Assembly (NCBI GenBank): GCA_977020255.1
Contig: CDROCS010000506.1
Coordinates: forward strand, 2,914,001-2,978,000
Length of the DNA stretch: 64,000 nt
Direction of reading: 5' to 3'
DNA from: Obrimoposthia wandeli
Taxonomy: Eukaryota
Both the position numbers and the translations under genes were made by a program. Numbering within the stretch: the first letter of the stretch is position 1; each line of letters opens with the position of its first letter. This document shows, one piece after another, positions 23,728 to 41,586 of the stretch. Under the pieces are notes generated by a model. It ran no database searches. It had not been told where the DNA came from and saw nothing but the letters and a program-made list of their open reading frames with translations.

Positions 23728-24642
23728 CTAGCTGGCACTCCAAACTTGTTGGCCAGTACGGCTGAAGTTATAACCTCCAAGTTGGTCGCCTTTAGCTTGG
23801 ATCTCCATTGACGATAACGCCTGCAGTAATTGCTGCTGCAAAGTGCGGAAGTAAATATTCTTCGGGATCACCAGTTCAAATGCTTCAGTGCTTAATGGAA
23901 TGAAGCCCAAGCCAAATTCACCCGCTGTACTTTGACTGGCACAACCAACGTCTGCTTCACCACGGGCAATGCAAGAAGCTAATTCACGTTCGCTATGACA
24001 GGTTTCTGCAGCGGTAAGCATATCGACTGTGTAAGCATGATTATGTAACCATTCTCCCAGAGCTCGCATACTGCCAGCACCTTCTTGACGAAGTGCCCAA
24101 CGCCAACGAGAGGTGAGTAATTCAGTTAAGTTTAACGATCGAGAATTAACTAAATCAGCGAGTTCTTTACTCACGACTAAGCCTTGTTGACGTTCAAAGG
24201 CATGGATCAGCACCCAGTTTTTATGTCCTGGATATTGCTGCAATAAAGCCGGATGACGCAAGGCTGCTTCTTCCGCATGACCCCAATGGATCGCGCATAT
24301 ATCCACATGGCCTTTACTGAGCATGGCTAAACCTTGGCGCGTACCTGTTGAGGTATAACCAACCAATGCTGTGCTGCCCAGTTTCTGCGCCATCTTGCCG
24401 ACGACCAACTGTAACAGTGGATCATCGGAACCTGCGATAAGTAAGCGGTCGTTAAGCACGCCGTTATGACAAGACTCCAGTAACCATTTATCTAACATAG
24501 CTTTGGGAAATAACCATTTACCCGTTACTTTTGTCGCAGGCAAGTGACCATCATTCGCCAAGGTGTAGACCTTTTTTTCATTCAGGTCTAAATATTCCGC
24601 GACTTGCTTTACGTTCATGAACGCGGGGGTATTTTCGCTCAT
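23728..24642 (-). CDS. Excisionase/MerR-like HTH fused to a molybdate/tungstate periplasmic-binding-protein-like domain (TaoR-like regulator)
   Basis: N-terminal MNVKQVAEYLDLNEKKVY...KVTGKWLFP HTH. C-terminal AGSDDP, STGTRQGL, RQEGAGS, GEADVG PBP-like motifs. 4-bp overlap with fdhD. Confidence 0.75.
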   Translation of the reverse strand: MSENTPAFMNVKQVAEYLDLNEKKVYTLANDGHLPATKVTGKWLFPKAMLDKWLLESCHNGVLNDRLLIAGSDDPLLQLVVGKMAQKLGSTALVGYTSTGTRQGLAMLSKGHVDICAIHWGHAEEAALRHPALLQQYPGHKNWVLIHAFERQQGLVVSKELADLVNSRSLNLTELLTSRWRWALRQEGAGSMRALGEWLHNHAYTVDMLTAAETCHSERELASCIARGEADVGCASQSTAGEFGLGFIPLSTEAFELVIPKNIYFRTLQQQLLQALSSMEIQAKGDQLGGYNFSRTGQQVWSAS

Positions 24643-25499
24643 GCAGTCTTACCGACAACAGCTTGTACTTCTGCGTCTGGACCTTTTACATCTAAGATCA
24701 AGTTCGCCATACCGTTATACACTTGGAAGCGATTACCTTTAGCACGCGCGACCATAGTAATGCCTAATTTTTTCGCTAAATCGTAGCCCATTTGCGTTGC
24801 ACCAGAGCGCGATAGCAATACTGGAATACCCATTTGCGCGACTTTAATCACCATCTCTGACGTGAGGCGACCAGTCGTATAAAAGATCTTGTCTTCACCC
24901 GTTTGGCCTTTTAACCACATTTCCCCAGCCAAAGTATCAACGGCGTTATGGCGACCTACATCTTCGACAAATGACAAGATCTCGGTGTCTTTACATACCG
25001 CACAGCCATGTACAGCACCAGCGGCTTTATACGTTGCGTTGTGATGCGTTAATGCTTCTAACAAGCCATACAATTTTGATTGGCGTAATTTAGGTTGTGG
25101 CAGTGTTATGCCTTCTAATTTTTTCATCACGTTACCGAACATAGTGCCTTGGCCACAGCCTGAGGTAACGGTTTTCTTGGTTAATTTCTCTGCTAATCCA
25201 TCGGTACTTTCACGCGTGATCACGGCTGCTGAATTGGTATCCCAATCAATAATCACAGATTCAATAGCGGTAATGTCTTCAATAAAGCCTTGGTTTTTTA
25301 AATAACCTAATACCAGATCTGAAGGGCGTGCGCCGAGTGTCATCACTGTCACGATTTCCACCCAATTTAAGTAGATCGTGAGCGGGTGCTCGCAGGCGAT
25401 CTCTTTGGTCATGGTATCGCCATATTCATCCATGATGTCAACTGTCATGGTGTGTTCAACTGAAGAATTGGTTCTAATTATTTTTGGTAATTGCGGCAT
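24639..25499 (-). CDS. fdhD: Formate dehydrogenase accessory sulfurtransferase
   Basis: Motifs TSGCGQG, GAVHGCA, EDVGRHNAVD, TTGRLTSEMV. Likely start ATG 25499. Confidence 0.93.
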   Translation of the reverse strand: MPQLPKIIRTNSSVEHTMTVDIMDEYGDTMTKEIACEHPLTIYLNWVEIVTVMTLGARPSDLVLGYLKNQGFIEDITAIESVIIDWDTNSAAVITRESTDGLAEKLTKKTVTSGCGQGTMFGNVMKKLEGITLPQPKLRQSKLYGLLEALTHHNATYKAAGAVHGCAVCKDTEILSFVEDVGRHNAVDTLAGEMWLKGQTGEDKIFYTTGRLTSEMVIKVAQMGIPVLLSRSGATQMGYDLAKKLGITMVARAKGNRFQVYNGMANLILDVKGPDAEVQAVVGKTA

Positions 25500-25538
25500 C
25501 CGAAATTCCTGCTGGTTTATATATCTATGAAGAGGTAA

Positions 25539-25555
25539 AGCAAAGTTCATTCCAA
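25539..25555 (-). promoter_or_regulatory. sigma54-type -24/-12 element for fdhD and the regulator
   Basis: Minus strand TTGGAATGAACTTTGCT: GG-N10-GC with a perfect TTGCT but a non-canonical -24 flank. Confidence 0.5.
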
Positions 25556-25616
25556 CTTACACTTAAGCGTCGAAGTAACTTGGCTATTACTCGTTTATTT
25601 GTCATTTCTTTCTAAC

Positions 25617-25633
25617 TTGGTCTAAATTTTGCT
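25617..25633 (+). promoter_or_regulatory. sigma54-type -24/-12 element for DUF3305-DUF3306
   Basis: TTGGTCTAAATTTTGCT: GG-N10-GC. Confidence 0.5.
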
Positions 25634-25695: not shown

Positions 25696-26262
25696 GTGCA
25701 ACTACGTGATGAAGATAAACCTCTAAATAAAGGTGATGAAGATAAGCACCTAAATAAGGGTGATGAACATAAGCGCTTAGCGAAAGACGAATCAAGCTGG
25801 CCAATCGCCTTCGGTCTTCGTTCTGAAGAAAAACAAGTTGGGCGTTGGACTACTTTGTCTTGGTCTATCGAGAATGTCGAATTATATGAGCAAGCAGCTG
25901 CGATAAATGATGATGAGGTTAGTACTACACCCTCTAATAACGTTGTTAATACGACTCGCTATGAAAGAACACTGTACTTATACCGCGATGAACGGACTGA
26001 TTACCGTTTTAACCTCAGCTCACAAGACCCTCATCTATTTATTGTTTGTGAAGTGACTGACGAGCAGTTTACGCCATTACTGATCACCGCTGCGCAAAGT
26101 GTTGCGAGCAGTTATATGGATGGTGACTATCAAGTGTTGCACATTCAAATGCCATTACCAGTGCAAGCTTGGATGGAAGCATTCATCGGTAGAAACGGCG
26201 AACTGATTGAATTTAAAAAGAAACGTTGTAAAGACAAGAAAGGGCGTTCAAGTGGCCAGTAA
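25696..26262 (+). CDS. DUF3305-family protein (FDH-associated)
   Basis: LYRDERTDYRFNL, PHLFIVC and position in the fdh cluster. GTG start after AAGGAG. Confidence 0.8.
   Translation: MQLRDEDKPLNKGDEDKHLNKGDEHKRLAKDESSWPIAFGLRSEEKQVGRWTTLSWSIENVELYEQAAAINDDEVSTTPSNNVVNTTRYERTLYLYRDERTDYRFNLSSQDPHLFIVCEVTDEQFTPLLITAAQSVASSYMDGDYQVLHIQMPLPVQAWMEAFIGRNGELIEFKKKRCKDKKGRSSGQ
25708..25788 (+). repeat. 27-bp in-frame tandem repeat x3 (DEDKPLNKG / DEDKHLNKG / DEHKRLAKD)
   Basis: Units gatgaagataaacctctaaataaaggt, gatgaagataagcacctaaataagggt, gatgaacataagcgcttagcgaaagac. Confidence 0.9.
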
Positions 26263-27016
26263 CTTTTTTCAACGTTGGTCAGATCGCTCATTAGCGGCAA
26301 AAGACCATACAGAAACTGATTTAGTCGTCACTAAAGACGCTGTTGTCGAAACTGAGAATCAGGGCTCAGAGCTAACATTAAAGCGCGATGCAGAGCTGGA
26401 TATTGAGCATGTTTCAGAGCCACACGCTGAATCGGCAGCGGATCTAGCGCTATCGACGCCATCGACAGATGTTACTGATGAGCAGGTCGAAGTTGAACTC
26501 ACTATTGATGATGCCGATAAGGTCACCTTTGATAGTGGTGTTGCTTCATTTCTACAGCATGGCGTTGATAAATCAGTAAAAAAAGCAGCGTTGGCGAAAT
26601 TATTTCATGCTGATGAATTTAACTATATCAGTACTATGGATGATCACACCGAGGATTTTTCTAATATTCCTAAGCTTGATGAGAGCATCGCGAAACAGTT
26701 GCGTGGTTGGGTTAAAACAGTATTGGAAGAACCTGAAGCTGAATTGGTTGAAGACACTGAGCTAGTTGAAGAAGATGAGGTATTAGCCGCTACTGAAACT
26801 GATCCGGAAACTGAATCTGGAGCAATTGCAGCCCCCAATACCGCTATAGATGATGAAGCTGTTCAAGCTATCACGGCTGATAATAGTTCGGCGTCCTGTT
26901 GTGATAAAAATTGTTGTGGTGAAAAGAGCTGTGATGAAAATAGTTGTAGTGAAAAAAATGGTGAAGAACAAAAAAACCAGCATCAGCAACACCTTCAACA
27001 GGCGGGTGAGACATAA
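26252..27016 (+). CDS. DUF3306-family acidic protein (FDH-associated)
   Basis: NFFQRWS, ALAKLF, DDHTEDF. GTG start overlaps the DUF3305 stop. Confidence 0.8.
   Translation: MASNFFQRWSDRSLAAKDHTETDLVVTKDAVVETENQGSELTLKRDAELDIEHVSEPHAESAADLALSTPSTDVTDEQVEVELTIDDADKVTFDSGVASFLQHGVDKSVKKAALAKLFHADEFNYISTMDDHTEDFSNIPKLDESIAKQLRGWVKTVLEEPEAELVEDTELVEEDEVLAATETDPETESGAIAAPNTAIDDEAVQAITADNSSASCCDKNCCGEKSCDENSCSEKNGEEQKNQHQQHLQQAGET
26897..26971 (+). repeat. 15-bp in-frame degenerate repeat x5 encoding a Cys-rich tail (CCDKN CCGEK SCDEN SCSEK NGEEQ)
   Basis: Units tgttgtgataaaaat, tgttgtggtgaaaag, agctgtgatgaaaat, agttgtagtgaaaaa, aatggtgaagaacaa. Confidence 0.85.
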
Positions 27017-27041
27017 AGGGACAAATAACCCTAATTTTAAT

Positions 27042-27090
27042 CGGGACATTTTGTTCCATGCACGATTGTTTATAGCGACATTATGTCCCG
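27042..27090. promoter_or_regulatory. Pair of candidate sigma54-activator binding sites
   Basis: CGGGACA-TTT-TGTTCCA (27042-27058) and AGCGACA-TTA-TGTCCCG (27074-27090), centres 32 bp apart, 110 and 78 bp upstream of the -24 GG. Confidence 0.65.
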
Positions 27091-27157
27091 TTTAGGAATA
27101 AGTAAACAATCCCTCTCTGACTTTAACTCTTTATAGGTCATTTTATTCCGTTAAAAG

Positions 27158-27174
27158 TTGGTTCGGTTATTGCT
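27158..27174 (+). promoter_or_regulatory. sigma54 promoter of the ferredoxin-chaperone-fdhABC operon
   Basis: TTGGTTCGGTTATTGCT: GG-N10-GC, with upstream palindromes. Confidence 0.65.
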
Positions 27175-27302: not shown

Positions 27303-29021
27303 ATGTTAAAAAGTACTTTAGAAACATTTACTGATCGCAACGGTCAAGCACGCTTTGCGGCGATAGCCGATACCGTTGAATTATCTAATCTGATCCCGCC
27401 GACGGTATCTTACGAAAGTCGTGGCAACTTATTGATCATTGGTGCTTACGATATTATCACTGCACTAGCACCGCAATTTGCAACATTGAATTCAGTAACA
27501 CTGCTGGCGACGTCTGCTGCAACAGATGCCGCGTCAGCGACGAACGATAGCAATACCAAAGATAAAGTATTTTTTAGTAATGAAGTAACAATTAAAGGTT
27601 ACCTAGGTGCGTTCGAAGTGAACTGCCGTGTAGCGGGTAGCTTACTGAGTATCTATACCAATTTAGCGGAAGTGACCATTGGTGGTGATAGTTTCGATTT
27701 AGTCGTTGATATGAGCGCGGATAGCCTTATTCAAACCGAAATACCAGCGCCAGGTTATTACCCTGTTGGTAGCGGTAAAGCAGCGATTGCCGATGTTATT
27801 GAAACCTTACCGGAAATGCTCGGTACGTTTGATAAACCAAAATATTTTCGTTTAGACAATGATATTTGTGCGCATTCATCACGTGGCGTGGGTGGTTGTA
27901 CACGTTGTGTTGATGCTTGTCCTGCAGGTGCGTTAACCAGTAATGGCCACGCTATCGAAATTAATCCGTTCTTATGCCAAGGCGTAGGGACGTGTGCCAC
28001 AGCTTGTCCGACTGAAGCGATTACTTACGCATTACCAGAACCAGAAAAGACCCAGAACTTTATTTATCGTTTATTAAACAGTTATCAAATGGCGGGTGGC
28101 GAAAAGCCAACGATCTTATTCTTTGGTAATCGTGACGAACAAACGGTAGCAGAAAAATTACCGTTATTACCATCAAATGTTATTCCTATTGCTTTAGAAG
28201 AGTTGGCTACGGTTGGTGTTGATACTTGGTTTAGCGCCTTACTCTATGGTGCGCATCAAGTATTACTGGCTACTAACATCGCCTATATTCCAGCGACGAT
28301 TGATCGCGTGCTTAATGATGAACTGGCCATTGCCAATACCTTCTTAACTGAGATGGGTTTTGAAGCTGGGCGTATTTGTTTGTTTGATTTAGATTCGGCA
28401 GCAGACTTTGTCGCGTTTACTCAACCGGTATTACCTGTTGTTGAGAATAAGATCGCGGTAATGGATAACGCAGTATTAGCAGAGCAACTGTCTGGCACTA
28501 AACGTGAAAAATTATTTACTGCGCTAGATAAATTATCAGCACAAAGTCCACTGCAACCGACACATTCGGTGATGCCTGAAAATGCACCTTATGGCAGCGT
28601 GGAATGTAAAACTGATGATTGTACCTTGTGTATGGGTTGCGTTGCAGTGTGTCCAACAAGTGCATTACATGCTGTTGGTGATCGCCCTGGTCTACAGTTT
28701 AGAGAACAAGATTGTGTGCAGTGTGGTCTTTGTGAAAAAGCCTGTCCTGAACAAGTAATTAGTCTTAAACCGGGTCTGAATTGGGACGCGGAAAGCCGTC
28801 GAAGTGTGGTGATGATCCACGAAGAAGAGGCGGCTTGTTGTTTAAGTTGTGGTAAAGCGTTTGCACCTGCATCGATGATTGCCATGTTAACGGAAAAACT
28901 CCAAGGTCACAGTCAATTTCAAGGTGATGCTATTCGCCGTTTATCTATGTGTGAAGACTGTCGTGTTCGCGATATTTTTTCAGATATGGCTGACGATCCA
29001 CTACGTCAGTTAAACGTGTAG
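27303..29021 (+). CDS. Polyferredoxin / 4Fe-4S cluster-binding protein of FDH clusters
   Basis: Motifs CTRCVDACP, CQGVGTCATACP, CTLCMGCVAVCP, CVQCGLCEKACP, CLSC, CEDC. Confidence 0.9.
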   Translation: MLKSTLETFTDRNGQARFAAIADTVELSNLIPPTVSYESRGNLLIIGAYDIITALAPQFATLNSVTLLATSAATDAASATNDSNTKDKVFFSNEVTIKGYLGAFEVNCRVAGSLLSIYTNLAEVTIGGDSFDLVVDMSADSLIQTEIPAPGYYPVGSGKAAIADVIETLPEMLGTFDKPKYFRLDNDICAHSSRGVGGCTRCVDACPAGALTSNGHAIEINPFLCQGVGTCATACPTEAITYALPEPEKTQNFIYRLLNSYQMAGGEKPTILFFGNRDEQTVAEKLPLLPSNVIPIALEELATVGVDTWFSALLYGAHQVLLATNIAYIPATIDRVLNDELAIANTFLTEMGFEAGRICLFDLDSAADFVAFTQPVLPVVENKIAVMDNAVLAEQLSGTKREKLFTALDKLSAQSPLQPTHSVMPENAPYGSVECKTDDCTLCMGCVAVCPTSALHAVGDRPGLQFREQDCVQCGLCEKACPEQVISLKPGLNWDAESRRSVVMIHEEEAACCLSCGKAFAPASMIAMLTEKLQGHSQFQGDAIRRLSMCEDCRVRDIFSDMADDPLRQLNV

Positions 29022-29030
29022 GGCTACATT

Positions 29031-29645
29031 ATGGGATCACAAAATATGTCACAGTCATTTACTGAAGATGCAGCATTGCGCATCGATATTTACAGCTTAC
29101 TTGCACACTTATTACGTAAAGCACCGGATGCAGAGGTGATTGATTGGTTAGCCAATCTCGACGTTGATGCGCCGAATGCATTAATTCAAACCACGGGTAT
29201 GTCAGCTGCTTGGCCACTATTGAAGTTGGCCGCACAAAAAACCTTATTAACAGCCGCGGAAGATGAATATCAAGATCTGTTTATTGGTATAGGCCATGGT
29301 GAAATAGTCCCGTTTGGTTCTTGGTTTCTTACTGGATCATTAATGGAAATGCCGCTTGCACATTTACGTCATGATTTGAAAAAACTGGGTTTTCAACGTG
29401 ATGAATCAGTAAAAGAACCGGAAGATCATATCGCCGCCTTGTTAGAAGTGATGACCATGTTGGTGAGCGAAAGTAATCATCGCGATCAAGCTGAGTTTTT
29501 TAATCGTCATATCGACACTTGGTTTGAACGTTTTTGCCAAGATTTGAAAAAAGCGAAAAGTGCCGTGTTTTACAGCGCAGTCGCCGAATTAGCTTGGCAA
29601 TTTTTAAGTATTGAAAAAATACGTTTTATCGACGTAAAAAAATAA
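29031..29645 (+). CDS. TorD/DmsD-family molybdo/tungstoenzyme chaperone
   Basis: PFGSWF and KEPEDHIAALLE motifs, located next to fdhA. Confidence 0.88.
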   Translation: MGSQNMSQSFTEDAALRIDIYSLLAHLLRKAPDAEVIDWLANLDVDAPNALIQTTGMSAAWPLLKLAAQKTLLTAAEDEYQDLFIGIGHGEIVPFGSWFLTGSLMEMPLAHLRHDLKKLGFQRDESVKEPEDHIAALLEVMTMLVSESNHRDQAEFFNRHIDTWFERFCQDLKKAKSAVFYSAVAELAWQFLSIEKIRFIDVKK

Positions 29646-29667
29646 TAACGATAAAGGAGCAAACTCG

Positions 29668-29871
29668 ATGAGCAAACAAAATAAGCCGGATGAAGACCGT
29701 CGCCAACTGTTAAAAAACATTGGTTTAGGTGTTGCAGTAGGCGCTATCGCAACGGGTGTATCCACCACTGCGAATGCGTCTGTTGATAGCCAAGAAAAGA
29801 ATGATAAACAACAAAAAACAACAGGTTACCATGAAACTCAACACATTCGTGACTATTACGATACTTTGTAA
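29668..29871 (+). CDS. Small Tat-motif protein preceding fdhA
   Basis: DRRQLLK twin-arginine motif, hydrophobic stretch, C-terminal GYHETQHIRDYY. AAGGAG RBS. Confidence 0.82.
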   Translation: MSKQNKPDEDRRQLLKNIGLGVAVGAIATGVSTTANASVDSQEKNDKQQKTTGYHETQHIRDYYDTL

Positions 29872-29883
29872 GCGGAGCTCTAA

Positions 29884-32739
29884 ATGAAATTAACTAAACG
29901 TTCCGATACGGTCAGTAAGGACGAAAAACAACTCGGTATTTCACGCCGTGCTTTTATGCGCAACTCTTCAATCGCTGCCGCTGGTGGTGCTGTCGGTGTG
30001 GGTATGTTCGCACCGGGCATGATGAAAAAGGCTGAAGCTAAGTCAGTTGATCCTGAATCGCCAGTAGAAATTAAACGTACTATCTGCTCTCACTGTTCTG
30101 TGGGCTGCGGTATCTACGCTGAAGTGCAAGAAGGTGTGTGGACAGGCCAAGAACCTGCATTTGATCACCCGTTCAACGCGGGCGGTCACTGTGCTAAAGG
30201 TGCTGCATTGCGCGAGCATGGTCATGGTGCTAAACGTCTAAAATATCCAATGAAACTGGTTAACGGTAAATGGATAAAAATGAGCTGGGAAACAGCACTT
30301 GAAGAAGTCAGTCAGCAAGTGCTTAAGATCCGTGAAGAGTCAGGTCCTGATTCTGTGTACTGGTTAGGCTCAGCAAAACACAATAATGAACAGGCGTATT
30401 TGTTCCGTAAAATGGTATCGATGTGGGGCACAAATAATGTCGATCACCAAGCACGTATTTGTCACTCTACAACAGTAGCGGGTGTAGCAAATACCTGGGG
30501 TTATGGCGCGATGACTAACTCGCTAAATGACATGCATAACTGTAAATCTATCTTGTTCATTGGCTCAAACCCTGCAGAAGCGCATCCTGTTGCTATGCAG
30601 CATATCCTCATCGCCAAAGAAAAGAACAGCTGTAAAATTGTGGTTGCCGATCCACGTCGTACCCGTACTGCAGCAAAAGCCGATCATTACGTATCACTAC
30701 GTCCTGGTTCTGACGTTGCCTTCGTTTGGGGCGTGCTATATCACGTGTTTAAAAACGAATGGGAAGATAAAGAATTTATCCATCAACGTGTTTATGGTAT
30801 GGAAGAAGTTCGTGCTGAAGTGGCTAAATGGACACCTGCAGAAGTTGAACGTGTATCTGGTGTGCCAGAAGCGGAAGTTTATGAAACCGCAAAACTATTA
30901 TCTGAAAACCGTCCAGGTTGCGTAGTTTGGTGTATGGGTGGTACTCAGCATACGACGGGTAATAACAATACTCGTGCTTATTGTATTCTTGAACTTGCGT
31001 TAGGCAACATGGGTAAATCTGGCGGCGGTGCTAATATTTTCCGTGGTCACGATAACGTCCAGGGCGCAACCGATTTTGGTGTGTTATCAGATAACTTACC
31101 GGGTTATTACGGTTTGTCTGAAGGCGCATGGAAACATTGGGCTGGGGTATGGGATGTTGATTACGAATGGCTGAAAAACCGTTTTGATCAAAAAGACTAC
31201 CGCGGCAAGCTGCCAATGAACCATGCTGGTATTCCGGTATCGCGTTGGATTGATGGCGTATTAGAAAACAAAGATAATATCGAACAGAACGATAACATTC
31301 GTGCCATGTTCTATTGGGGTCACGCGGTTAACTCACAAACACGTGGTCCAGAAATGCGCACAGCGATGGGCAAACTGGACATGATGGTTATTGTTGACCC
31401 GTATCCAGGTGTTGCAGCAGTAATGAACGGTCGTACTGACAATGTTTACTTGCTACCAGCGACAACGCAGTTTGAAACGACTGGCTCGGTTACTGCAACC
31501 AACCGTTCAATTCAATGGCGTGACAAGGTCATAGAACCGTTATTTGAATCAAAACCTGATCATGAAATCATGTATTTATTGATGAAAAAATTAGGTCTAG
31601 CGGATCAAGTGTTCAAGCACATCGAGGTTAAAAATAACCAACCTGTGATTGAAGATATTACCCGTGAATATAACAAAGGTATGTGGACAATCGGTTATAC
31701 CGGTCAAAGTCCAGAACGCTTGAAAGCACATCAGAAAAATTGGCATACATTCCATAAAACCACGCTAGAAGGCGAGGGCGGTGTAGCGAACGGTGAAACT
31801 TACGGTTTACCTTGGCCATGTTGGGGTACGCCAGAGATGAAACATCCTGGTACTCATATTCTTTATGACACATCTAAGCCTGTTGCTTTAGGTGGCGGTA
31901 ATTTCCGTGCCCGTTTTGGTGTTGAGCGTAATGGTGAAAGCTTACTGGCTGTAGACAGTTATTCAAAAGACTGTGAGTTAGAAGGCGGTTTCCCAGAATT
32001 CAGTGCCAAACTGCTTAAGCAACTTGGCTGGTGGGATGAACTGACTGCGGATGAGAAATTAAAAGCAGAAGGTAAGAACTGGAAAACCGACGTATCTGGT
32101 GGCATTCAACGTGTGGCAATTAAACACGGTTGTATCCCATTTGGTAACGCTAAAGCCCGTGCTGTAGTGTGGACGTTCCCGGATGCTGTGCCGATTCACC
32201 GCGAACCTTTGTATACGCCTCGTCGTGACTTAGTTGCTGATTATCCAACTTGGGATGACAGTGAAGCGATGTTCCGTTTACCGACGTTATACAAATCAAT
32301 CCAAGACAAAGATGTATCGGGCGAATACCCAATTATCTTAACCTCGGGTCGTTTGGTTGAATATGAAGGTGGTGGTGATGAAACGCGTTCAAATCCTTGG
32401 TTAGCAGAATTACAACAAGAAATGTTTGTTGAAGTTAACCCTAAAGATGCTAACGATTTAGGCTTTAGAGACGGTGAAATGGTGTGGGTTGAAGGTGCTG
32501 AAAAAGGCCGTATTCATGTTAAAGCGATGGTTACGCGCCGGGTTAAACCGGGTCTTGCGTTTTTACCATTCCATTTCGGTGGTTATTTCCAAGGTGAAGA
32601 CTTACGTGGCAATTATCCTGAAGGTTCGGTGCCATATGTATCGGGCGAATCAGCAAACATTGCAACAACCTATGGTTATGATCCTGTGACACAAATGCAG
32701 GAAACGAAAGTAACCCTCTGTAAAATATCTAAAGCGTAA
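29884..32739 (+). CDS. fdhA: Periplasmic formate dehydrogenase alpha subunit, cysteine-type, probably W-bisPGD
   Basis: Tat signal SRRAFMR, 4Fe-4S motif CSHCSVGC...C, active site ARICHS with Cys rather than Sec, FRGHDNVQG. Confidence 0.95.
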   Translation: MKLTKRSDTVSKDEKQLGISRRAFMRNSSIAAAGGAVGVGMFAPGMMKKAEAKSVDPESPVEIKRTICSHCSVGCGIYAEVQEGVWTGQEPAFDHPFNAGGHCAKGAALREHGHGAKRLKYPMKLVNGKWIKMSWETALEEVSQQVLKIREESGPDSVYWLGSAKHNNEQAYLFRKMVSMWGTNNVDHQARICHSTTVAGVANTWGYGAMTNSLNDMHNCKSILFIGSNPAEAHPVAMQHILIAKEKNSCKIVVADPRRTRTAAKADHYVSLRPGSDVAFVWGVLYHVFKNEWEDKEFIHQRVYGMEEVRAEVAKWTPAEVERVSGVPEAEVYETAKLLSENRPGCVVWCMGGTQHTTGNNNTRAYCILELALGNMGKSGGGANIFRGHDNVQGATDFGVLSDNLPGYYGLSEGAWKHWAGVWDVDYEWLKNRFDQKDYRGKLPMNHAGIPVSRWIDGVLENKDNIEQNDNIRAMFYWGHAVNSQTRGPEMRTAMGKLDMMVIVDPYPGVAAVMNGRTDNVYLLPATTQFETTGSVTATNRSIQWRDKVIEPLFESKPDHEIMYLLMKKLGLADQVFKHIEVKNNQPVIEDITREYNKGMWTIGYTGQSPERLKAHQKNWHTFHKTTLEGEGGVANGETYGLPWPCWGTPEMKHPGTHILYDTSKPVALGGGNFRARFGVERNGESLLAVDSYSKDCELEGGFPEFSAKLLKQLGWWDELTADEKLKAEGKNWKTDVSGGIQRVAIKHGCIPFGNAKARAVVWTFPDAVPIHREPLYTPRRDLVADYPTWDDSEAMFRLPTLYKSIQDKDVSGEYPIILTSGRLVEYEGGGDETRSNPWLAELQQEMFVEVNPKDANDLGFRDGEMVWVEGAEKGRIHVKAMVTRRVKPGLAFLPFHFGGYFQGEDLRGNYPEGSVPYVSGESANIATTYGYDPVTQMQETKVTLCKISKA

Positions 32740-32751
32740 GGAGTCATTCCG

Positions 32752-33369
32752 ATGGCGAGTATGAAATTTCTGTGTGACTCGAAGCGTTGTATTGAATGCA
32801 ATGGTTGTGTTACCGCATGTAAGAACGAAAATGATGATGCCCTTGAATGGGGTATCCAACGCCGCCGTGTTGTTACTTTAAACGACGGCGAACCGGGTGA
32901 AAGCTCAATCTCTGTGGCATGTATGCATTGTACTGATGCACCGTGTATGGCTGTTTGTCCTGCAGATTGCTTTGAGCGTACTGAAGACGGCATCGTATTA
33001 CACGACAAAGATCTGTGTATCGGTTGTGGTTATTGCTTGTTTGCCTGCCCATTTGGCGCGCCGCAATTTCCAAAACAAGATGCCTTTGGTGAACGTGGCA
33101 AGATGGATAAATGTACCTTCTGTGCTGGTGGACCAAATGTAGAAGATGGTTCAGCTGAAGAGAAAGAAAAATACGGCGCTAACCGTATTGCTGAAGGTAA
33201 GTTACCTATGTGTGCATCGCTTTGTTCTACTAAAGCCTTGCTTGCTGGTGATGCATCTAAGATCTCTGATGTTTATGCTGAGCGTGTTGTTGCCCGTGGT
33301 GCTAAAAATGCTGGTTGGGCAAGTACTGCTGACCTCTCTTATGATGCGAGTAAACCGCAAGAAAGCTAA
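32752..33369 (+). CDS. fdhB: Formate dehydrogenase Fe-S beta subunit
   Basis: Four Cys clusters: CIECNGC, CMHCTDAPCMAVCP, CIGCGYCLFACP, KCTFC. Confidence 0.95.
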   Translation: MASMKFLCDSKRCIECNGCVTACKNENDDALEWGIQRRRVVTLNDGEPGESSISVACMHCTDAPCMAVCPADCFERTEDGIVLHDKDLCIGCGYCLFACPFGAPQFPKQDAFGERGKMDKCTFCAGGPNVEDGSAEEKEKYGANRIAEGKLPMCASLCSTKALLAGDASKISDVYAERVVARGAKNAGWASTADLSYDASKPQES

Positions 33370-33532
33370 TCTAGGTACGCTGGTTAATGTAAATTAACTG
33401 GCTGCTGTAATAGTGATTAGTTTTAATATCTATTAGTTTAATAGCTATTAGTTTTAATACATAGAGGCAGTCGGTTTAGTGATAAGCCGCTGTCTATTTA
33501 GCGCTGCTGTGTAGACACAGTGAGGAGATTTA

Positions 33533-34591
33533 ATGACTAAGCGAATTCAACATTGGTTCACTCTGTTAGTGAGTGTATTAATGCTGAGCTTTACCTTGTC
33601 AGCATTTGCGAGTGAACCCGCAGATGACAAGACGCGCAGTGAACGTTTAGGCGAATCGTCAGTACAAGGTGAGCTTGCTGGTTTTGCTGGCGCTGATTAT
33701 TGGCGTGCAGTGCGAGATGGCCAAGAGGGTTACACGACATCAAAATCACCAGAACACGGTGTATTGATCAGTGTACCTGGTCAAGCTTGGTTTATTCTCA
33801 AAGAGAAATGGATGTCACCATTAGGTGCATTAGCGATCTTTGGCAGTATCGGATTAGTGGTACTGGCTTATTTCACTATTGGTCCATTAAGACTGAGTAA
33901 AGCTAAAACTGGCCGTAAGATCCAACGTTGGAGTTTGGTTGACCGGACACTGCATTGGAGTATGGCATTTACCTTTTTGAGTCTTGCTGCGACAGGACTG
34001 GCGTTGGTATACGGCAAGCACTTTATTAAACCCATTATTCCACGTGATATTTGGGCGATGTTTATTTATGGCGCCAAACAGTATCACAACTATGTGGGTC
34101 CATTGTTTGCCATCTTACTGTTTACGGTGATGGTTAAGTGGTGGCGTAAGAGCTTGTTTACCAAAGTCGATATCAAATGGTTCATGAAAATGGGCGGTAT
34201 GGTCGGTAAACATAAAGGTTCGCACCCATCAGCTGACTTCTCTAACGGTGGTGAAAAAGCGCTGTTTTGGTTACTGATATTTTGTGGTGTGTTTATTACT
34301 CTTAGTGGTTTTGTTCTAGATTTCCCATTGTTTGATCAAACACGTCGTGACATGGAACTCTCTAACTTAGTGCATATGTTGGCATCGTTAGTATTGATCT
34401 GTGGTTTTGTATTCCATATCTATGTTGGTTTAGTCGGTATCGAAGCATCACTAGAAGGTATGGTGACTGGCGAAGTTGATGAAACATGGGCGAAAGAGCA
34501 CCATGATATCTGGTATGAAAAAGTGAAAGACTTACCAGAGAATCAGTCGACTACAGAGCCAGCGTCAAAGGCAAAGCCAGAAGACAAATAG
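33533..34591 (+). CDS. fdhC: Formate dehydrogenase cytochrome b gamma subunit
   Basis: N-terminal signal/periplasmic part, TM helices with heme His residues (TLHW, YHNY, LVHM, FHIY), EWAKEHH-type motif. Confidence 0.92.
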   Translation: MTKRIQHWFTLLVSVLMLSFTLSAFASEPADDKTRSERLGESSVQGELAGFAGADYWRAVRDGQEGYTTSKSPEHGVLISVPGQAWFILKEKWMSPLGALAIFGSIGLVVLAYFTIGPLRLSKAKTGRKIQRWSLVDRTLHWSMAFTFLSLAATGLALVYGKHFIKPIIPRDIWAMFIYGAKQYHNYVGPLFAILLFTVMVKWWRKSLFTKVDIKWFMKMGGMVGKHKGSHPSADFSNGGEKALFWLLIFCGVFITLSGFVLDFPLFDQTRRDMELSNLVHMLASLVLICGFVFHIYVGLVGIEASLEGMVTGEVDETWAKEHHDIWYEKVKDLPENQSTTEPASKAKPEDK

Positions 34592-34722: not shown

Positions 34723-36381
34723 TTATTGGCATGAAATTTCATCCCACAGATTGTTAGAAACCGTTGGTGTATCCCAAACGCCAGGAGCATTTTTAGCAAT
34801 AAAACACTTACCTTCATTTGTTACTTTGTCACCGTTGGCTACTTGAGATGCACCATCTTCCCAAATAATGAAATTAGTTGGTGATGAATCAACTGACGTT
34901 GCACTTACTGGTGTGGCTGTTACTGTCTTAATGAATAACCATGGTCCACCTGCGTCAGGTAAATCACCTTGTGTCCACCACTTACTTTCATAGATAGAGT
35001 CCTTATAACTCACTTGTTCACCCGCTGAAGCATACACTTTACTGGCATCCCAAGCCGTTACACCACCTGCTCCGGGATCTGTCGGTTCAGTCGGTTTCGC
35101 TGGCATTTCACTGTCAGGTACTATACGTACTTCAGGCCAACCTGCGTGAGAGCCATAGAAGTTTGTCACACACTTACCATAATCACCTGGTTCTAGAGCC
35201 GAATAAGCGGTTTGGAAACCAACTAATTCACACTCAAACGAAGCTCCACCTGGACGGTCCGCGTAATATTTCCAGTTACCATCCCAGTTTGTATAAAGCA
35301 CGTCAGTTGCGCCATTCAGATTAATACTGCCGTAGGGTGTTTGTTGGAAACACGTATTTTTCTCATCAGATTCAATCGGTATTTGGTAGTGTGCTGACAA
35401 TCCCTCCCAGTAACGAATTCGGTTAACTGGTTGCCCTTTCGTTTTGTTTTGCTCTCCACACTCTATCCCGCCGTTGATAACATTGATTGTCGTACCAAAA
35501 CCATAAGTAATGCCGGCATCTGCTTCACGTTGTGATGGAGACCATGTACGATCAATAACATGTAACATTGCTGGTTTAGGTGCCTGAGGCGTCAAAAAGA
35601 ACCAAACAGCAGATGCTAAATTCAACCAAGAATCAGCAACAATACTGGGGTTATCTAACAGTACTGTGGCATCACCGTCGAACATTACTTCAGAGAACAT
35701 GCCATAGTTAAAATGGTAAGAAAGTTGTTTCGCACCGCGACCAAAGTAACCTTGTCCTGGAGAACATGGCCAACGGGCATTTTGCCAATCGTTTTGACCA
35801 CAACCTGTCGTGTAGCCAGCTTGTCCTTCAGACCAACCCATTTCTCGAACGTGTACAAGCGCTTGCTGCCACTCTTCTAATGCTTGTGGGTTGTCTGAGA
35901 TATTGTCTTTAGCAATATGCCCGCCCGTTTCTTGTGAGAAATGAGCAAATGCCGTAATAATTGATTTTTTACAAATTGCATCTGAGTTACGGTCATCTGT
36001 GTATTCTCCACAGAATGCTGGGAATTTACCAACAGCACGTAATAAACGTGTATAGGTATATTCAGGCGCGGCCATCTGCGTTAAGAAGTCCCATTCAGAT
36101 TGTGGGAAAACACGTTCTAAGCGTTTAACATTGTCTGGATTTGACGCTAAACCAGGTTCAATGGCGTCGACCACTGCGTTAGGCTGTGTGCGTAATGCTT
36201 GAGCCCAAATATCATACATAGGGTCCAATGTTTTAGCATCTTCTGCTGCTTGAATATCTGATTGAGAAACGATAAATCCGGTAGGGTTAAGTGGGTCTTC
36301 TTGTGGGGTCATTGCGTAACTGTTAAGCACAACCCCGTAGCCAGTTAAAATAGATAGAAGTGTACGTTTAAACATGATCAT
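34723..36381 (-). CDS. GH19 chitinase with two C-terminal CBM5/12-like chitin-binding modules
   Basis: Signal peptide, FSQETG and VREMG catalytic Glu motifs, YFGRGAKQLSYHFNY, INGGIEC, Pro/Thr linker, AWDASKVY...AKWW-type module (YESKWWTQGD). Confidence 0.9.
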   Translation of the reverse strand: MIMFKRTLLSILTGYGVVLNSYAMTPQEDPLNPTGFIVSQSDIQAAEDAKTLDPMYDIWAQALRTQPNAVVDAIEPGLASNPDNVKRLERVFPQSEWDFLTQMAAPEYTYTRLLRAVGKFPAFCGEYTDDRNSDAICKKSIITAFAHFSQETGGHIAKDNISDNPQALEEWQQALVHVREMGWSEGQAGYTTGCGQNDWQNARWPCSPGQGYFGRGAKQLSYHFNYGMFSEVMFDGDATVLLDNPSIVADSWLNLASAVWFFLTPQAPKPAMLHVIDRTWSPSQREADAGITYGFGTTINVINGGIECGEQNKTKGQPVNRIRYWEGLSAHYQIPIESDEKNTCFQQTPYGSINLNGATDVLYTNWDGNWKYYADRPGGASFECELVGFQTAYSALEPGDYGKCVTNFYGSHAGWPEVRIVPDSEMPAKPTEPTDPGAGGVTAWDASKVYASAGEQVSYKDSIYESKWWTQGDLPDAGGPWLFIKTVTATPVSATSVDSSPTNFIIWEDGASQVANGDKVTNEGKCFIAKNAPGVWDTPTVSNNLWDEISCQ

Positions 36382-36862: not shown

Positions 36863-38689
36863 CTAAACGCGACCTTGTAGTGGTACTACACGCACCAAAT
36901 CACCAATTTCTGCATTTGCCTGTTCAGGTAATACTTCAACCAAACAATTCGCTTCACTCATCGAACGTAAGATGCCTGAGCCTTGCTGTCCGGTACTTTT
37001 TACGGTTAAACGACCATTAGCATCAAAACTAAAAATACCACGGGTATACTCTGTACGGTTAGGACGAGAGCGGAACTTTTCTGTCGCAACAGCATTGAAC
37101 ACTTGTGGCTGCCAATTATCCATACCTTGCAGTTTGCGGATCACAGGTTCGACAAATTGTAAAAACACCACCATCACGGCAACTGGATTGCCCGGTAAAC
37201 CAAAAAACGGCGTGTCATCGATGTGGCCAAAGGCAAGCGGACGACCTGGACGCATATTAATACGCCAAAAGTTAATTTGTCCGAGCTTGGCTAATACTGT
37301 CTTAATGTAATCAGCATCGCCAACCGAGACACCACCAGAAGATAAGATTAAATCAGCTTGCTGGGCACCTTGTTCTAAGGTCATTTCCAATGCAGCTTCA
37401 TTGTCTTCGATAATACCTAGGTCAATCACCTCACAACCCGCTTGCGTTAACATCGCGTGTAAAGTGTAGCGGTTGGAATCGTAGATACAGTTATTCTTTT
37501 GCGCTTCACCTGGATGTTGAACTTCATCACCGGTGGAAAAAATCGCCACGCGAATTGCTCTTTTTACCGAGACTTGATTGATCCCCAATGAGGCGATCAT
37601 GCCTAACTCTGGTGCGGTGATCTTGCTATTCGCAGCAACGGCTGTTTGGCCTAATGCTAGATCTTCACCTGCTTGGCGTACATTCTGGCCAGCGTTAATT
37701 GCAGCCATGTTTAGATTAAAACGCACTATGTTGTCGATTTGCTCTGCTTGCTCACGCATCACGACTGTATCTGCGTACTCTGGTACCGCTGCACCCGTCA
37801 TGATTCGGACTGCTTGGCCTTTTTCGAGTGGTAAGTCGTAACTGTGACCAGCCATCACATGAGCAACGACCGTATAGTCTTCACGTTCTAAATCATCACC
37901 GCGAATGGCATAACCATCCATTGCTGAATTGGTGTGTTGTGGAACATTGACGGGCGATAAAATATCACGTGCGACAATTTGACCCAAAGCGGCTTTTAAA
38001 TCAACGGTCTGCGCTTGTTCAATTGGTACAATATGACCAAGGATACGTTCACGACCTTCGGCAACAGATAACATGCCTTGTGGTGTTAGATCGCCGCACT
38101 GCAAGCCTTGTGGTAGTAATTGCGATGCTGCGCTAGTATCAACTTCGCCTTGAATAAAGCGCACCACAAAATCGGTGATCTGTTCAAGATTATTAATATC
38201 GAGTAGGGGGAGTGACGCTTTTTCTGCTAAAGCTGCTGATCCCGATGCGGGAACAGCTACATTGGCTGCCACGGCAATAATATTATCATCTGTTGGATGC
38301 AACCAAGGTTTGCCTACTTCACTACGGTGTAATTCAATCTTAGGGAAACTCAGCTTTTTAAAGCCTTCAACCAAAATAAGGTCGAGTTGGGTTTGATCTA
38401 ATTGCGCGATTAAATGCGGCAATGTTGCTTCTTCATCAGGTGTTTCGGTGACTAATGCACGGCGACAACGTGATGAGATCAGCATTTGGCTCGCGCCTGC
38501 TTTACGTAAGCGGTGGCTGTCTTTACCTGGTTGGTCAATATCAAAATCATGGTGTGCATGTTTAATCACAGCAACCCGAATACCACGCGCAACTAGCTTA
38601 GGTAACATGGCTTCAAGTAGTGTTGTTTTACCTGTACCACTGAAGGCTGCAAAGCCAAGTAAAGGCAGTGACGCGTAGATTTTACTCAT
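36863..38689 (-). CDS. mobB-moeA: Fused MobB-MoeA (molybdopterin metal insertase)
   Basis: N-terminal SGTGKTT, IKHAHHDFDID, VEGFK (MobB). SAMDGYA, RIMTGA, SGGVSVGD, MRPGRP, LPGNP (MoeA). Confidence 0.92.
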   Translation of the reverse strand: MSKIYASLPLLGFAAFSGTGKTTLLEAMLPKLVARGIRVAVIKHAHHDFDIDQPGKDSHRLRKAGASQMLISSRCRRALVTETPDEEATLPHLIAQLDQTQLDLILVEGFKKLSFPKIELHRSEVGKPWLHPTDDNIIAVAANVAVPASGSAALAEKASLPLLDINNLEQITDFVVRFIQGEVDTSAASQLLPQGLQCGDLTPQGMLSVAEGRERILGHIVPIEQAQTVDLKAALGQIVARDILSPVNVPQHTNSAMDGYAIRGDDLEREDYTVVAHVMAGHSYDLPLEKGQAVRIMTGAAVPEYADTVVMREQAEQIDNIVRFNLNMAAINAGQNVRQAGEDLALGQTAVAANSKITAPELGMIASLGINQVSVKRAIRVAIFSTGDEVQHPGEAQKNNCIYDSNRYTLHAMLTQAGCEVIDLGIIEDNEAALEMTLEQGAQQADLILSSGGVSVGDADYIKTVLAKLGQINFWRINMRPGRPLAFGHIDDTPFFGLPGNPVAVMVVFLQFVEPVIRKLQGMDNWQPQVFNAVATEKFRSRPNRTEYTRGIFSFDANGRLTVKSTGQQGSGILRSMSEANCLVEVLPEQANAEIGDLVRVVPLQGRV

Positions 38690-38727
38690 AGGTGTAGACT
38701 CATTGTTGGTGATTTATTATGGCTAAT

Positions 38728-39312
38728 TTATTGCTGTCCAAATTGGGCTAGTTCCACAGGGGTATTTAAATTAACGAAGGCATTTGGCTGATCGCTAAAG
38801 TCCACTGTGAGCATATTGCACTGACGATACAACAGGATGATCTTACGATCGCCATTATCTAAAAATGCTTCTAATTTAGGTAAAATACGGCGATGTAACA
38901 GCGTTACTACGGGTTGAATATGTTCACCATCATGGGCAACGAGGATATCTGTGTCAGCTTGGCAAGCTGCGGCCATTCGCGCGACTAAATCATGCGGTAG
39001 TTGTGGGCAATCACAAGGTACAAAGCCAATCCATTCAGCATCTGTTAAATGTAAAATTGCAGCATGCATACCACCGAGTGGTCCTGGGTAACCTTGTAAT
39101 TTATCACCAAATACCGCACCGTATTGGCTGTACTCATCTTGGTTGCGATTGGCGTTAATTGCAATTTCAGCTGTCTGTGGTGCCAAGGTATCGATAACAT
39201 GCTCAATCATGGCTTTACCCGCTAATTGCACTAAGCCTTTATCGTTGCCACCCATGCGGCTTGCTTGCCCGCCTGCTAAAATTACCCAACTTGTTTGTTC
39301 AGCCGAAAGCAT
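38728..39312 (-). CDS. mobA: Molybdenum cofactor guanylyltransferase
   Basis: Motifs [32 protein letters not shown]. Confidence 0.94.
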
Positions 39313-40003
39313 AGTTATCCTTATCTTTTTTAATGAGCTGTAAATCTGCTCGTTCGATTAGTTTGCTATTGCTAATGCACCATTGACGGCGGCAAAGTGC
39401 GGTAAGCGCATTTTGCTGGTGGCTGGTGATGACTAACGTTGAGCCGCGCTCGAGTAAATCTTTGGCTAACACCACTTGGCGTTCGATGGATTCTTTATCC
39501 ATACTGGCACTTGATTCATCCATTAACAGCACGCTGGGTTTTAGTACCCACGCTCTGGCCATTGCGACACGTTGGCGTTCGCCACCTGACAATACCGAAA
39601 TATGTTCATTAGCTAAGGTCTCTAACCCTACCATACGTAAGGCAGTTATCGCTTCACTTCGTTGTTCTTGGCGGCCTTTTAGGGCGAATTTTAAACCATA
39701 ACAGACATTATCCAATACGCTGCCATCAAACATATACGGTGTTTGGTGCATATAGATAACGCCATTTTTGCCATTACTTTTAAATAATCGTGCAAACCAG
39801 CTTTGGTTCTGTAGGTTGACAGTACCTGTGGTTGGGCTTTGTAAACCGGATAATATTTTTAGCAGGGTGGTTTTACCCACGCCGTTACCGCCAGTAAGGT
39901 AAATCGCTTCTTGCGGGCCGAATTTAAGGTGAGGTATGTGAAAAAGCAGCCGATCTTTAAAGCGAATCGAGATATCTTCTGCTTGAATTGTAATTTGCGA
40001 CAT
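39299..40003 (-). CDS. tupC: Tungstate ABC transporter ATPase
   Basis: [21 protein letters not shown]. In an operon with tupAB. Confidence 0.85.
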
Positions 40004-40017
40004 GACCTTACCTCAGC

Positions 40018-40719
40018 CTAATTGGTACGCAAGTGGGCTTTACCACGGGCGATAGATAATAAGAAATTCAGTCCTAGGGCTAAGATTAATAACACCATGC
40101 CTAGGGCTACCCCTTGTGCAAATGCGCCTTTTGAACTTTCGAGAGCGATTGCAGTGGGGATATTACGGGTCGAATTGAGAATATTACCGCCGACCATCAT
40201 TGAACAGCCAACTTCGGTAATAATACGACTAAATGCGGCGATAACAGCAGCAAGTAGCGGGAATCGACATTCCCACATCAAACTTAATAATGCGCGGGGT
40301 AAACTTGCCCCCAATGTCAGTGCGGTTTCCCAAGCGCGGCGATCACTGTTTTGAAATGCCGCGTGCATCATTGACACTAAAATGGGAAAGCACACCATCA
40401 TCTGTCCCAATATCATCGCTTTTTGGGTGAATAGCATTTGCCAATCACCTAGCGGACCAGCGCGAGACAGCGTCATGTAAAGTAACAAGCCAATCACCAC
40501 GGTTGGGATTGATTGGCAGGTATTAAATAAGGATAGTATTAACCAACGCCCAGGGAATTTTCCGTAGGCGAGGGCAAAGGCGATCACTAATGCTGGTACG
40601 AGTACCAAGGTGATCGCCAGCAAAGACACTGAGAATGACACACCGACAATTCCCCACAGTGCCATATCGCCACTGAAGAGAAGTTGTACTGCGTCTTGGG
40701 TCGTTTGCCAGATATTCAT
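40018..40719 (-). CDS. tupB: Tungstate ABC transporter permease
   Basis: IPTVVIGL, EVGCSMMVGGNI, TRNIPTAIALE. Confidence 0.88.
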   Translation of the reverse strand: MNIWQTTQDAVQLLFSGDMALWGIVGVSFSVSLLAITLVLVPALVIAFALAYGKFPGRWLILSLFNTCQSIPTVVIGLLLYMTLSRAGPLGDWQMLFTQKAMILGQMMVCFPILVSMMHAAFQNSDRRAWETALTLGASLPRALLSLMWECRFPLLAAVIAAFSRIITEVGCSMMVGGNILNSTRNIPTAIALESSKGAFAQGVALGMVLLILALGLNFLLSIARGKAHLRTN

Positions 40720-40746
40720 TCGTTATCTAAGTTACTCGTTGGTTGA

Positions 40747-41586
40747 TTAAGACTTGGCATTAGCGACAAATAATTGCTCGCCACCACGTTTATAACTGTT
40801 GATCATAGTCTGTGCTTTTGGATTAACTAACCAATCGCTGAAAATCTTTGCACCTTGATAGTTGATGCTTGGGTAACGGCTTGGATTCACTAAGATAACT
40901 TGGTACGGGTTAAATAAACGTTTGTCACCTTGTACTACAATCTTCAGGTCAAGTTTGTTTTGGTAAGCTAACCAAGTACCACGGTCAGTTAATGTATATG
41001 CCTGTAGTTCCGATGCCATGTTCAGTGTTGGTCCCATGCCTTGGCCTACCGCTTTGTAGCCTGAGAAAGTAGGTTCCATTTTAGTTTGTGCCCACAGACC
41101 TAATTCTTTCTTGTTCGTGCCTGAGTCATCACCACGAGAGATGAAAGTTGCGTTGTAAGATGCGATGCCAGCGAGTGCTTTTACAACATCTTTATCGGCA
41201 TTAATTTTAGCCGGATCATTTTTTGGACCAACCAATACAAAGTCGTTATACATCAATTTACGTGGTAGTACGCCGTAACCAGCTGCCACGAATTTCGCTT
41301 CTGCATTCGCTGCGTGCGTCATGACTAAATCAACATCGCCATTTTGACCCATACGCAGTGATTTACCGGTACCTGCGGCAAGTACGTCGACTGTATAACC
41401 TGTGTCTTTTTTGAATTCTGGTAATAAGAAATCAAGCAGTCCTGAATGATAAGTACTCGTTGTCGTCGCCAAACGGATCTTCATGTCGTCAGCGGCATGA
41501 ACACCGGCTGTTGTTACAAGTGCGAATAGCGCAAGTAATGTTTGGATACATTTCATCGGTGTTACAGTCATCGGTTTTACAGTCAT
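40747..41586 (-). CDS. tupA: Tungstate-binding periplasmic protein
   Basis: TupA signature LATTTST, GTGKSL, YNDFVLVGP, SRGDDSGT. Confidence 0.92.
   Translation of the reverse strand: MTVKPMTVTPMKCIQTLLALFALVTTAGVHAADDMKIRLATTTSTYHSGLLDFLLPEFKKDTGYTVDVLAAGTGKSLRMGQNGDVDLVMTHAANAEAKFVAAGYGVLPRKLMYNDFVLVGPKNDPAKINADKDVVKALAGIASYNATFISRGDDSGTNKKELGLWAQTKMEPTFSGYKAVGQGMGPTLNMASELQAYTLTDRGTWLAYQNKLDLKIVVQGDKRLFNPYQVILVNPSRYPSINYQGAKIFSDWLVNPKAQTMINSYKRGGEQLFVANAKS

Follow-up and report, generated by a model that had tools for sequence, protein, structure and literature searches.

Among the closest described counterparts of the element considered here is the enhancer through which NtrC (GlnG) acts on the E. 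coli promoter glnAp2. As in that system, the 64-kb window (by which we mean the whole stretch of DNA analysed, 64,000 nucleotides of contig CDROCS010000506.1 in the Obrimoposthia wandeli assembly GCA_977020255.1) combines a protein with receiver, AAA+ and Fis-type helix-turn-helix (HTH) domains, 17-bp dyads of the 7-3-7 form and a sigma-54 promoter. The window holds three such dyads, two in front of a formate dehydrogenase (fdh) operon and one in front of tupA, the first gene of an operon for tungstate uptake and molybdenum cofactor (Moco) synthesis. At glnAp2, the NtrC sites (TGCACCA-N3-TGGTGCA) comprise two strong copies, 32 bp apart at about -140 and -108, each bound by a dimer. The fdh dyads, at about -135 and -103, parallel this geometry.

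A second point of reference is the VC1521/VC1522 pair of V. cholerae within the RpoN-dependent VC1510-VC1527 cluster, which shares with the window both the gene neighbourhood and the -24/-12 elements. Chromatin immunoprecipitation sequencing (ChIP-seq) and RNA sequencing have shown that VC1516-10 (fdh), VC1523-27 (tup/Moco), VC1519 and VC1518-17 are RpoN-bound and RpoN-dependent (PMC3439928), and in an rpoN mutant of V. parahaemolyticus the fdh cluster is down by 3-5 log2 units (PMC9817140). The V. cholerae fdh promoter defined by ChIP-seq, TGGAACGCTATTTGC (PMC3439928), recurs unchanged in a Vibrio relative in our comparison (L003), where a dyad lies upstream of it. VC1522 and VC1523 stand next to each other in divergent orientation. 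The V. cholerae work defined the sigma-54 promoters only; in the open literature searched, neither an upstream site nor an operator or activator assignment for these operons was found, and VC1522 occurs in gene lists only.

From sequence comparison, the three dyads are probably (we would say with a probability of about 0.85) upstream activating sequences of the sigma-54-dependent response regulator encoded at 41849-43315. They are very probably the docking site of this protein because they travel with the neighbouring NtrC-type regulator across many bacteria. The features on which this reading is built are as follows.

27042-27058, no strand: distal fdh dyad CGGGACATTTTGTTCCA, with one core mismatch (TGTT for TGTC), centre 27050
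27074-27090, no strand: promoter-proximal fdh dyad AGCGACATTATGTCCCG, exact core, centre 27082
41802-41818, no strand: tupA dyad TGAGACAAAATGTCGCA, exact core, centre 41810
27159-27174, plus strand: fdh sigma-54 (-24/-12) promoter TGGTTCGGTTATTGCT, conserved in relatives
41674-41659, minus strand: tupA sigma-54 (-24/-12) promoter TGGCATCTAATTTGCT, TGGCAY-N5-TTGCT kept in all relatives
27303-34591, plus strand: fdh operon, comprising an iron-sulphur (Fe-S) protein, a NarJ/TorD-like chaperone, a small open reading frame (ORF) with a twin-arginine translocation (Tat) signal, FdhA, FdhB and FdhC (Pfam, ORF map)
36863-41586, minus strand: tupA, tupB, tupC, a mobA-like gene and a mobB-moeA fusion, the second putative target operon (Pfam, NCBIfam)
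36863-38689, minus strand: the mobB-moeA fusion gene of that operon
41849-43315, plus strand: NtrC-family response regulator, candidate dyad binder (Pfam)
43312-45357, plus strand: sensor histidine kinase with sCache_3_3, HisKA and HATPase_c domains (Pfam), its start overlapping the end of the regulator gene by 4 nt

The dyads follow the form T-G-v-GACA-WWW-TGTC-b-C-A, that is, two 7-nt half-sites around a 3-nt spacer. An original prediction, made from the window alone, had described the palindrome as occurring twice before fdh and once 14.7 kb away before tupA; sequences and coordinates were confirmed, the distal fdh copy having one core mismatch. The 32 bp between the fdh centres also stood, as did the placement of the dyads 78-137 bp upstream of a -24 element, the distances from centre to GG being 78 (27082), 110 (27050) and 137 bp (41810). 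Relative to the inferred start sites, the centres lie at about -103 (27082), -135 (27050) and, for tupA, -162 (41810); the tupA dyad also lies 31-47 bp before the ATG of the regulator gene. Several features of an NtrC-family enhancer site are found here: a -24/-12 element (GG-N10-GC) downstream, a distance of approx. 70-200 bp that clears the polymerase footprint, dyad symmetry and an intact, co-inherited activator. The further proposal that paired dyads occupy one helical face holds for fdh, where the spacing is 32 bp in the window and where relatives have a second, usually weaker dyad 20-35 bp upstream of the proximal one; tupA has one clear dyad in the window, and a second tupA dyad is present in several Vibrio and Shewanella loci.

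Conservation was followed in an even sample of 61 Vibrionaceae genomes, together with orthologs from other public genomes. The regulator has an ortholog in 36 of the 61 (E<=1e-199), and the first gene of the fdh operon, encoding the Fe-S protein, occurs in 39, including all 36 that are regulator-positive. In the spacer between tupA and the regulator gene, the dyad TGvGACAWWWTGTCbCA and a TGGCAY-N5-TTGCT promoter on the tupA strand were present in 30/30 Vibrionaceae loci examined, as well as in Aeromonas, Shewanella and a gammaproteobacterial metagenome-assembled genome, whereas the remainder of the spacer has diverged. The core lies 71-207 bp before the TGG in these relatives; in one Vibrio clade, one of the half-sites reads GTCA and not GACA, and the Thiothrix spacer carries a version with two mismatches. 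Fdh promoters from regulator-positive genomes tell the same story, a dyad and a sigma-54 promoter being found in 29/29 examined, with an exact core in 28. In most lineages, 82-83 bp separate the start of the proximal core from the TGG; in two Vibrio groups the distance is 92-94 bp. Among more distant bacteria, Thiothrix lacustris has dyads 82 and 116 bp before the sigma-54 promoter that precedes its fdh chaperone gene, and Rhizobium terricola has two dyads, 22 bp apart, with a sigma-54 promoter TGGCATGCGGGTTGCT directly after the kinase gene.

Genomes without the regulator serve as natural controls. Two Vibrionaceae, G014 (L141) and G041 (L142), have kept fdh, fdhD and tupABC-mob and lack the two-component genes, their best paralog of the regulator being 37% identical. 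In both of these regulator-negative fdh loci (2/2), the Fe-S gene is preceded by neither dyad nor sigma-54 promoter, and fdhD directly adjoins tupA. A third genome, G018, carries a decaying locus in which the dyads survive beside a fragment of the regulator gene and a broken Fe-S gene. The claim that the dyads form the operator of the regulator at 41849-43315 is therefore strongly supported at the level of sequence by the 30 tupA spacers, the 29 fdh promoters and the absence of dyads from G014 and G041.

A genome-wide scan, which had been proposed as a way of finding further regulon members, was run in ten Vibrionaceae genomes (approx. 51 Mb) with a composite pattern (dyad core, 50-142 nt, TGG-N8-TTGC), the reversed pattern serving as control. 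It returned 27 matches compared with three for the control. When matches were assigned by the coordinates of the regulator and fdh genes, 12 fell at fdh promoters and seven at tupA promoters (19/27), while eight were scattered singletons, mostly with spacers other than A/T. Shewanella frigidimarina gave just two composite matches, one in the tupA spacer and one on another contig, where it lies 1.4 kb upstream of the Fe-S gene. The predicted regulon therefore consists essentially of the fdh and tup/Moco operons.

Whether the three dyads might be a chance recurrence of an AT-rich palindrome has to be considered in view of the plain counts. Within the 64 kb there are three copies of the exact core GACANNNTGTC, where 0.83 would be expected, and 4 of 100 shuffles reach three; enrichment within the window alone is only marginal. 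Nor is the core enriched genome-wide in two Photobacterium genomes, where it occurs at approx. 2 per Mb (13 and 11 copies, compared with 25 and 14 for a control pattern); the other copies there are mostly intragenic or GC-clamped hairpins, none of them accompanied by a sigma-54 promoter in a fitting position. Nonetheless, in dozens of genomes, some as distant as Thiothrix, sigma-54 promoters are preceded at the same offset by this dyad, and the composite pattern finds 19 of its 27 matches at fdh or tupA promoters compared with three control matches in all. Given their position before both sigma-54 promoters and their conservation in relatives, the dyads are therefore far beyond chance, and a coincidental origin has a likelihood close to nil.

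A weight matrix trained on 50 distinct sites, all from other genomes, gives its highest score in the window to the tupA dyad (41810, 24.4), followed by 27082 (20.5), 37978 (18.3) and 27050 (15.9), the next best position scoring 5.6; on 30 shuffles of the window the best score averages 10.7 with a maximum of 19.0. The position at 37978 belongs to an intragenic dyad, CGTGCGACAATTTGACCCAAA (37968-37988), within mobB-moeA. It recurs at the same codons in two Photobacterium genomes and not in Vibrio, and because the element encodes the conserved peptide LGQIVA (derived by hand from the matrix matches), coding coincidence is its simplest reading; a weaker dyad-like word lies at 38032, 54 bp from the 37978 site. 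Along the window's entire contig, the 15-mer class GNGACAAAATGTCNC occurs once only, at the tupA dyad. A scan of the whole assembly with an 11-mer (3508 matches compared with 3950 for the control) is uninformative, since most of the assembly is not from the window's bacterium.

The regulator itself (488 aa) has the Pfam domain order Response_reg, Sigma54_activat, AAA_lid_14 and HTH_8, the last at residues 441-482. Its receiver is intact, GAFTGA is found at residues 226-231 and the Walker B motif reads LFLDE. The adjacent histidine kinase is its cognate sensor. Database names of its relatives are all generic, and the protein falls under every NCBIfam equivalog cut-off (NtrC, TIGR01818, 393 compared with 558.6 bits; AtoC, 389 compared with 714; ZraR, 328 compared with 760). 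The S. oneidensis ortholog is presumably annotated as tungstate-responsive ("TugR"). Identity reaches 94-95% with Moritella proteins, the closest named relatives, and 85% with those of Photobacterium, which is unusually high for different orders and suggests horizontal movement of the fdh/tup/two-component cluster. The recognition helix, GNKSAAARxLG[VI][AS]RKTLERK, is shared by orthologs as far apart as those of Photobacterium and Thiothrix; non-orthologous members of the family have a different one. The best solved-structure match of the DNA-binding domain is 3rqi (E = 0.004), a 184-aa response regulator with HRRTLQRK that we take, judging by its HTH sequence, as RegA-type; the C-terminal HTH of ZraR also aligns with that of the regulator.

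Other proteins might own the dyads. The cluster encodes a TunR-like regulator directly after fdhD, at the following positions.

23728-25550, minus strand: fdhD followed by the TunR-like regulator (Pfam, NCBIfam, ORF map)
23728-24642, minus strand: TunR-like regulator with HTH_17 and an oxyanion-binding PBP_like domain, directly after fdhD with a 4-nt ORF overlap

A metal-oxyanion-binding regulator of this type might own the operator, as such proteins bind palindromes as dimers, and it is present in the window and in all Photobacterium relatives examined. However, only 19 of the 36 regulator-positive Vibrionaceae were found to have it; in the 17 without it (at E<=1e-20) the dyads are kept in 15/15 examined, and it was likewise not found in Shewanella and Rhizobium, both of which have dyads. 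Moreover, a position 80-160 bp upstream of a sigma-54 promoter suits a looping activator, not a repressor, so that ownership by the TunR-like protein appears very unlikely. The boxes of redox response regulators of the RegA/PrrA/ActR type bear a striking resemblance to the dyads. ChIP sites of R. capsulatus RegA include CGGACAAAATGTCGC and GTGACAATTTGTCCC (PMC5359404), the half-sites of the P. pantotrophus napE repeat TGAGACAtttTGTCGCA are the same as those of the window's tupA dyad (bioRxiv 10.1101/2023.01.17.523660), and the leading structural match of the regulator's own DNA-binding domain is the supposedly RegA-type 3rqi. Yet an HTH_8 protein of RegA size (approx. 180 aa) was not found in the four Vibrionaceae genomes searched, in which HTH_8 frames were of approx. 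100-133 aa (taken as Fis), gave one partial match of 63 aa or were of at least 285 aa, and the dyads track the presence and absence of the sigma-54 activator; we give very little credence to the idea that they are RegA-type boxes in these bacteria.

An explanation at the RNA level applies to the fdh pair, which lies just past the DUF3306 stop codon at 27016 and could be a hairpin acting as a terminator or processing site. The fold of positions 27036-27096 reaches -19.5 kcal/mol (z = -4.2) by pairing of the distal dyad's left half with the right half of the proximal dyad. Such a fold is a by-product, however, because a palindromic motif present twice can always pair with its second copy. A T-run is absent, and a terminator scan of that strand found no terminator; the pairing halves do not covary in relatives (in G027, for example, CGGGACA stands opposite TGTCGCA). 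The tupA copy sits in the spacer between divergent promoters; on the tupA strand its fold does not surpass that of shuffles (z = -0.5), and on the opposite strand it is weak (-4.8 kcal/mol, z = -2.3, with 8/200 shuffles as good). A hairpin function is thus highly improbable, and the preferred reading is still that of an activator site. Each genome encodes 11-21 HTH_8 proteins, and the assignment to the adjacent regulator is made because of linkage and co-occurrence; the adjacent sigma-54 activator is thus the sole candidate that fits linkage, co-occurrence and domain logic.

That abundance of HTH_8 proteins is one of several points that weigh against this assignment. Many of the compared genomes are closely related, so that there are fewer independent observations than the counts imply, and deep comparisons are few (Aeromonas, Shewanella, Thiothrix and Rhizobium). 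The Rhizobium dyads could also be bound by a protein of the RegA/ActR type, whose box is similar. In the literature searched, no binding or expression experiment on the regulator or its orthologs was found. In addition, two further promoters of the sigma-54 type lie in the cluster.

25554-25539, minus strand: fdhD sigma-54-type promoter TGGAATGAACTTTGCT, conserved in Photobacterium and Vibrio
25618-25633, plus strand: DUF3305-DUF3306 sigma-54-type promoter TGGTCTAAATTTTGCT, conserved in Photobacterium and Vibrio
25696-27016, plus strand: DUF3305 and DUF3306 (Pfam, ORF map), the stop codon of the latter at 27016

These promoters are divergent and approx. 65 bp apart (25539-25633), and no dyad was recognised at them in the window, Photobacterium or Vibrio, L003 having loose half-sites only. 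It may be that the motif accounts for part of the cluster only, or else that these promoters are reached over a distance; the fdh enhancer 1.4 kb away, weak half-sites and another activator are the candidates for their activation.

It is reasonable to picture the activator as working in the following manner. The adjacent Cache-domain kinase would phosphorylate the regulator, dimers of which would bind the 7-3-7 dyads through the Fis-type HTH and assemble an active AAA+ ring, a step that the two fdh dyads, three helical turns apart, would favour. By DNA looping the ring would then reach the sigma-54 holoenzyme at -24/-12 and drive open-complex formation. In this way the fdh operon and the tupABC-mobA-mobB/moeA operon would be switched on, providing both the enzyme and the uptake and cofactor supply that its metal requires. 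To judge from the composition of the regulon, the signal may be formate or the supply of tungstate or molybdate. Near the start of the regulator gene there is a weak sigma-70-like match (TTGACT-18-CAAAAT) whose -10 hexamer is overlapped by the tupA dyad, the TTGACT word being present also in two Photobacterium tupA-regulator spacers; on the strength of this overlap, negative autoregulation of the regulator is possible.

Some details of the fdh upstream region deserve comment. Three extra half-sites had been pointed out, TGAGACA (27007), AGGGACA (27017) and AGCGACA (27194); all three are present, but the last, which lies downstream of the fdh promoter, is not conserved and is probably there by chance. 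The other two belong to a block of their own.

27007-27033, no strand: block with half-sites TGAGACA (27007) and AGGGACA (27017), conserved in an alignment of eight fdh promoters

The conserved islands of that alignment are the dyads, this half-site block, a 45-bp block by the -24 element and the promoter. By its sequence, the 27007-27033 block is possibly a third, degenerate site of the fdh array; in the fdh loci of Vibrio, a similar third site, with two mismatches, is found 132-144 bp upstream. A dyad of a second type, AAGGGA-N7-CCCTA/T (27016-27034), overlaps the half-site at 27017 and recurs in the fdh promoters of Photobacterium; it may belong to a third, degenerate site of the activator, or another protein may bind there. 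The 45-bp block abutting the -24 element (27115-27158) is near-invariant among Photobacterium-type promoters and does not contain the consensus of integration host factor (IHF), of which no copy was found between the fdh dyads and the promoter. In the AT-rich tupA spacer there are three one-mismatch IHF matches, to which no meaning can be attached. A sigma-54-like match at 29721-29736 was rejected as a promoter, since it lies inside the small ORF before fdhA and is a chance match. This ORF (29668-29871, plus strand, 67 aa), between the chaperone gene and fdhA, has the twin-arginine motif RRQLLKNIG and is probably the Tat-signal small subunit annotated as hypothetical in V. parahaemolyticus (VP1512).

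As regards the remainder of the locus, the start of fdhD in the ORF list (25550) is probably too far upstream, as an ATG at 25500 is preceded by an AGGAA ribosome-binding site, and a further gene lies between the two proposed target operons.

34723-36381, minus strand: chitinase (Pfam, NCBIfam, ORF map)

The window (contig C506 of the assembly, G000) is bacterial DNA, and the bulk of the assembly (1.35 Gb, 6912 contigs) is not from its bacterium. The assembly contains a second ortholog of the regulator on contig C1028 (68121-69584, 85% identity), preceded at 31-45 bp from its start by the same 15-mer, of which another copy lies 23.6 kb away. A homolog with 52% identity is encoded on contig C1089 (733773-734903). 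Therefore, several bacteria are represented in the assembly besides its bulk.

The sigma-54 dependence of the orthologous operons was already known; what is added here is a proposed assignment of activator and operator. An operator and a regulon are thereby put forward for an activator shared by at least Moritella, Vibrionaceae, Aeromonas, Shewanella, Thiothrix and Rhizobium, including VC1522, the proposed regulon being made up of periplasmic formate dehydrogenase, tungstate uptake and Moco tailoring. This names the likely activator behind the strongly RpoN-dependent fdh/tup operons of Vibrio transcriptomes and supplies a 17-bp target that is open to direct test. Because the NtrC-style enhancer is textbook knowledge, the value lies in annotation and regulon assignment, not in concept.

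Within the context of known regulators, the differences are as clear as the likenesses. Compared with NtrC, the half-sites here are GvGACA/TGTCbC, not TGCACC/GGTGCA, the protein lies below the NtrC cut-offs, and the targets are fdh and the tungstate uptake/Moco genes, not those of nitrogen assimilation. Of the named sigma-54 response regulators, ZraR and AtoC come closest: both rank among the best NCBIfam matches and have the same domain order; however, the regulator is far below their equivalog cut-offs and the targets differ. The RegA/PrrA/RegR/ActR box (GCGGC-N5-GTCGC) is nearly the same DNA word as the dyads, both binders have a Fis-type HTH_8 domain, and the ARKTLERK of the regulator resembles the HRRTLQRK of RegA-type proteins; the RegA-like HTH match (3rqi) fits this similarity of DNA word. 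It is tempting, though rather unlikely, that VC1522-type activators read essentially the same DNA word as RegA/PrrA/ActR by means of a closely related Fis-type recognition helix. If this were so, one enhancer "code" would be reused by two mechanistically different classes of regulators, competition or cross-talk at fdh and respiratory promoters would be possible where both occur, e.g., in Rhizobium, and a single fdh enhancer might loop over 1.4 kb to serve the dyad-less fdhD and DUF3305 promoters as well. The two classes are nonetheless built differently: RegA proteins are two-domain proteins of approx. 185 aa that act with sigma-70 polymerase, whereas the regulator described here is a 488-aa sigma-54 activator.

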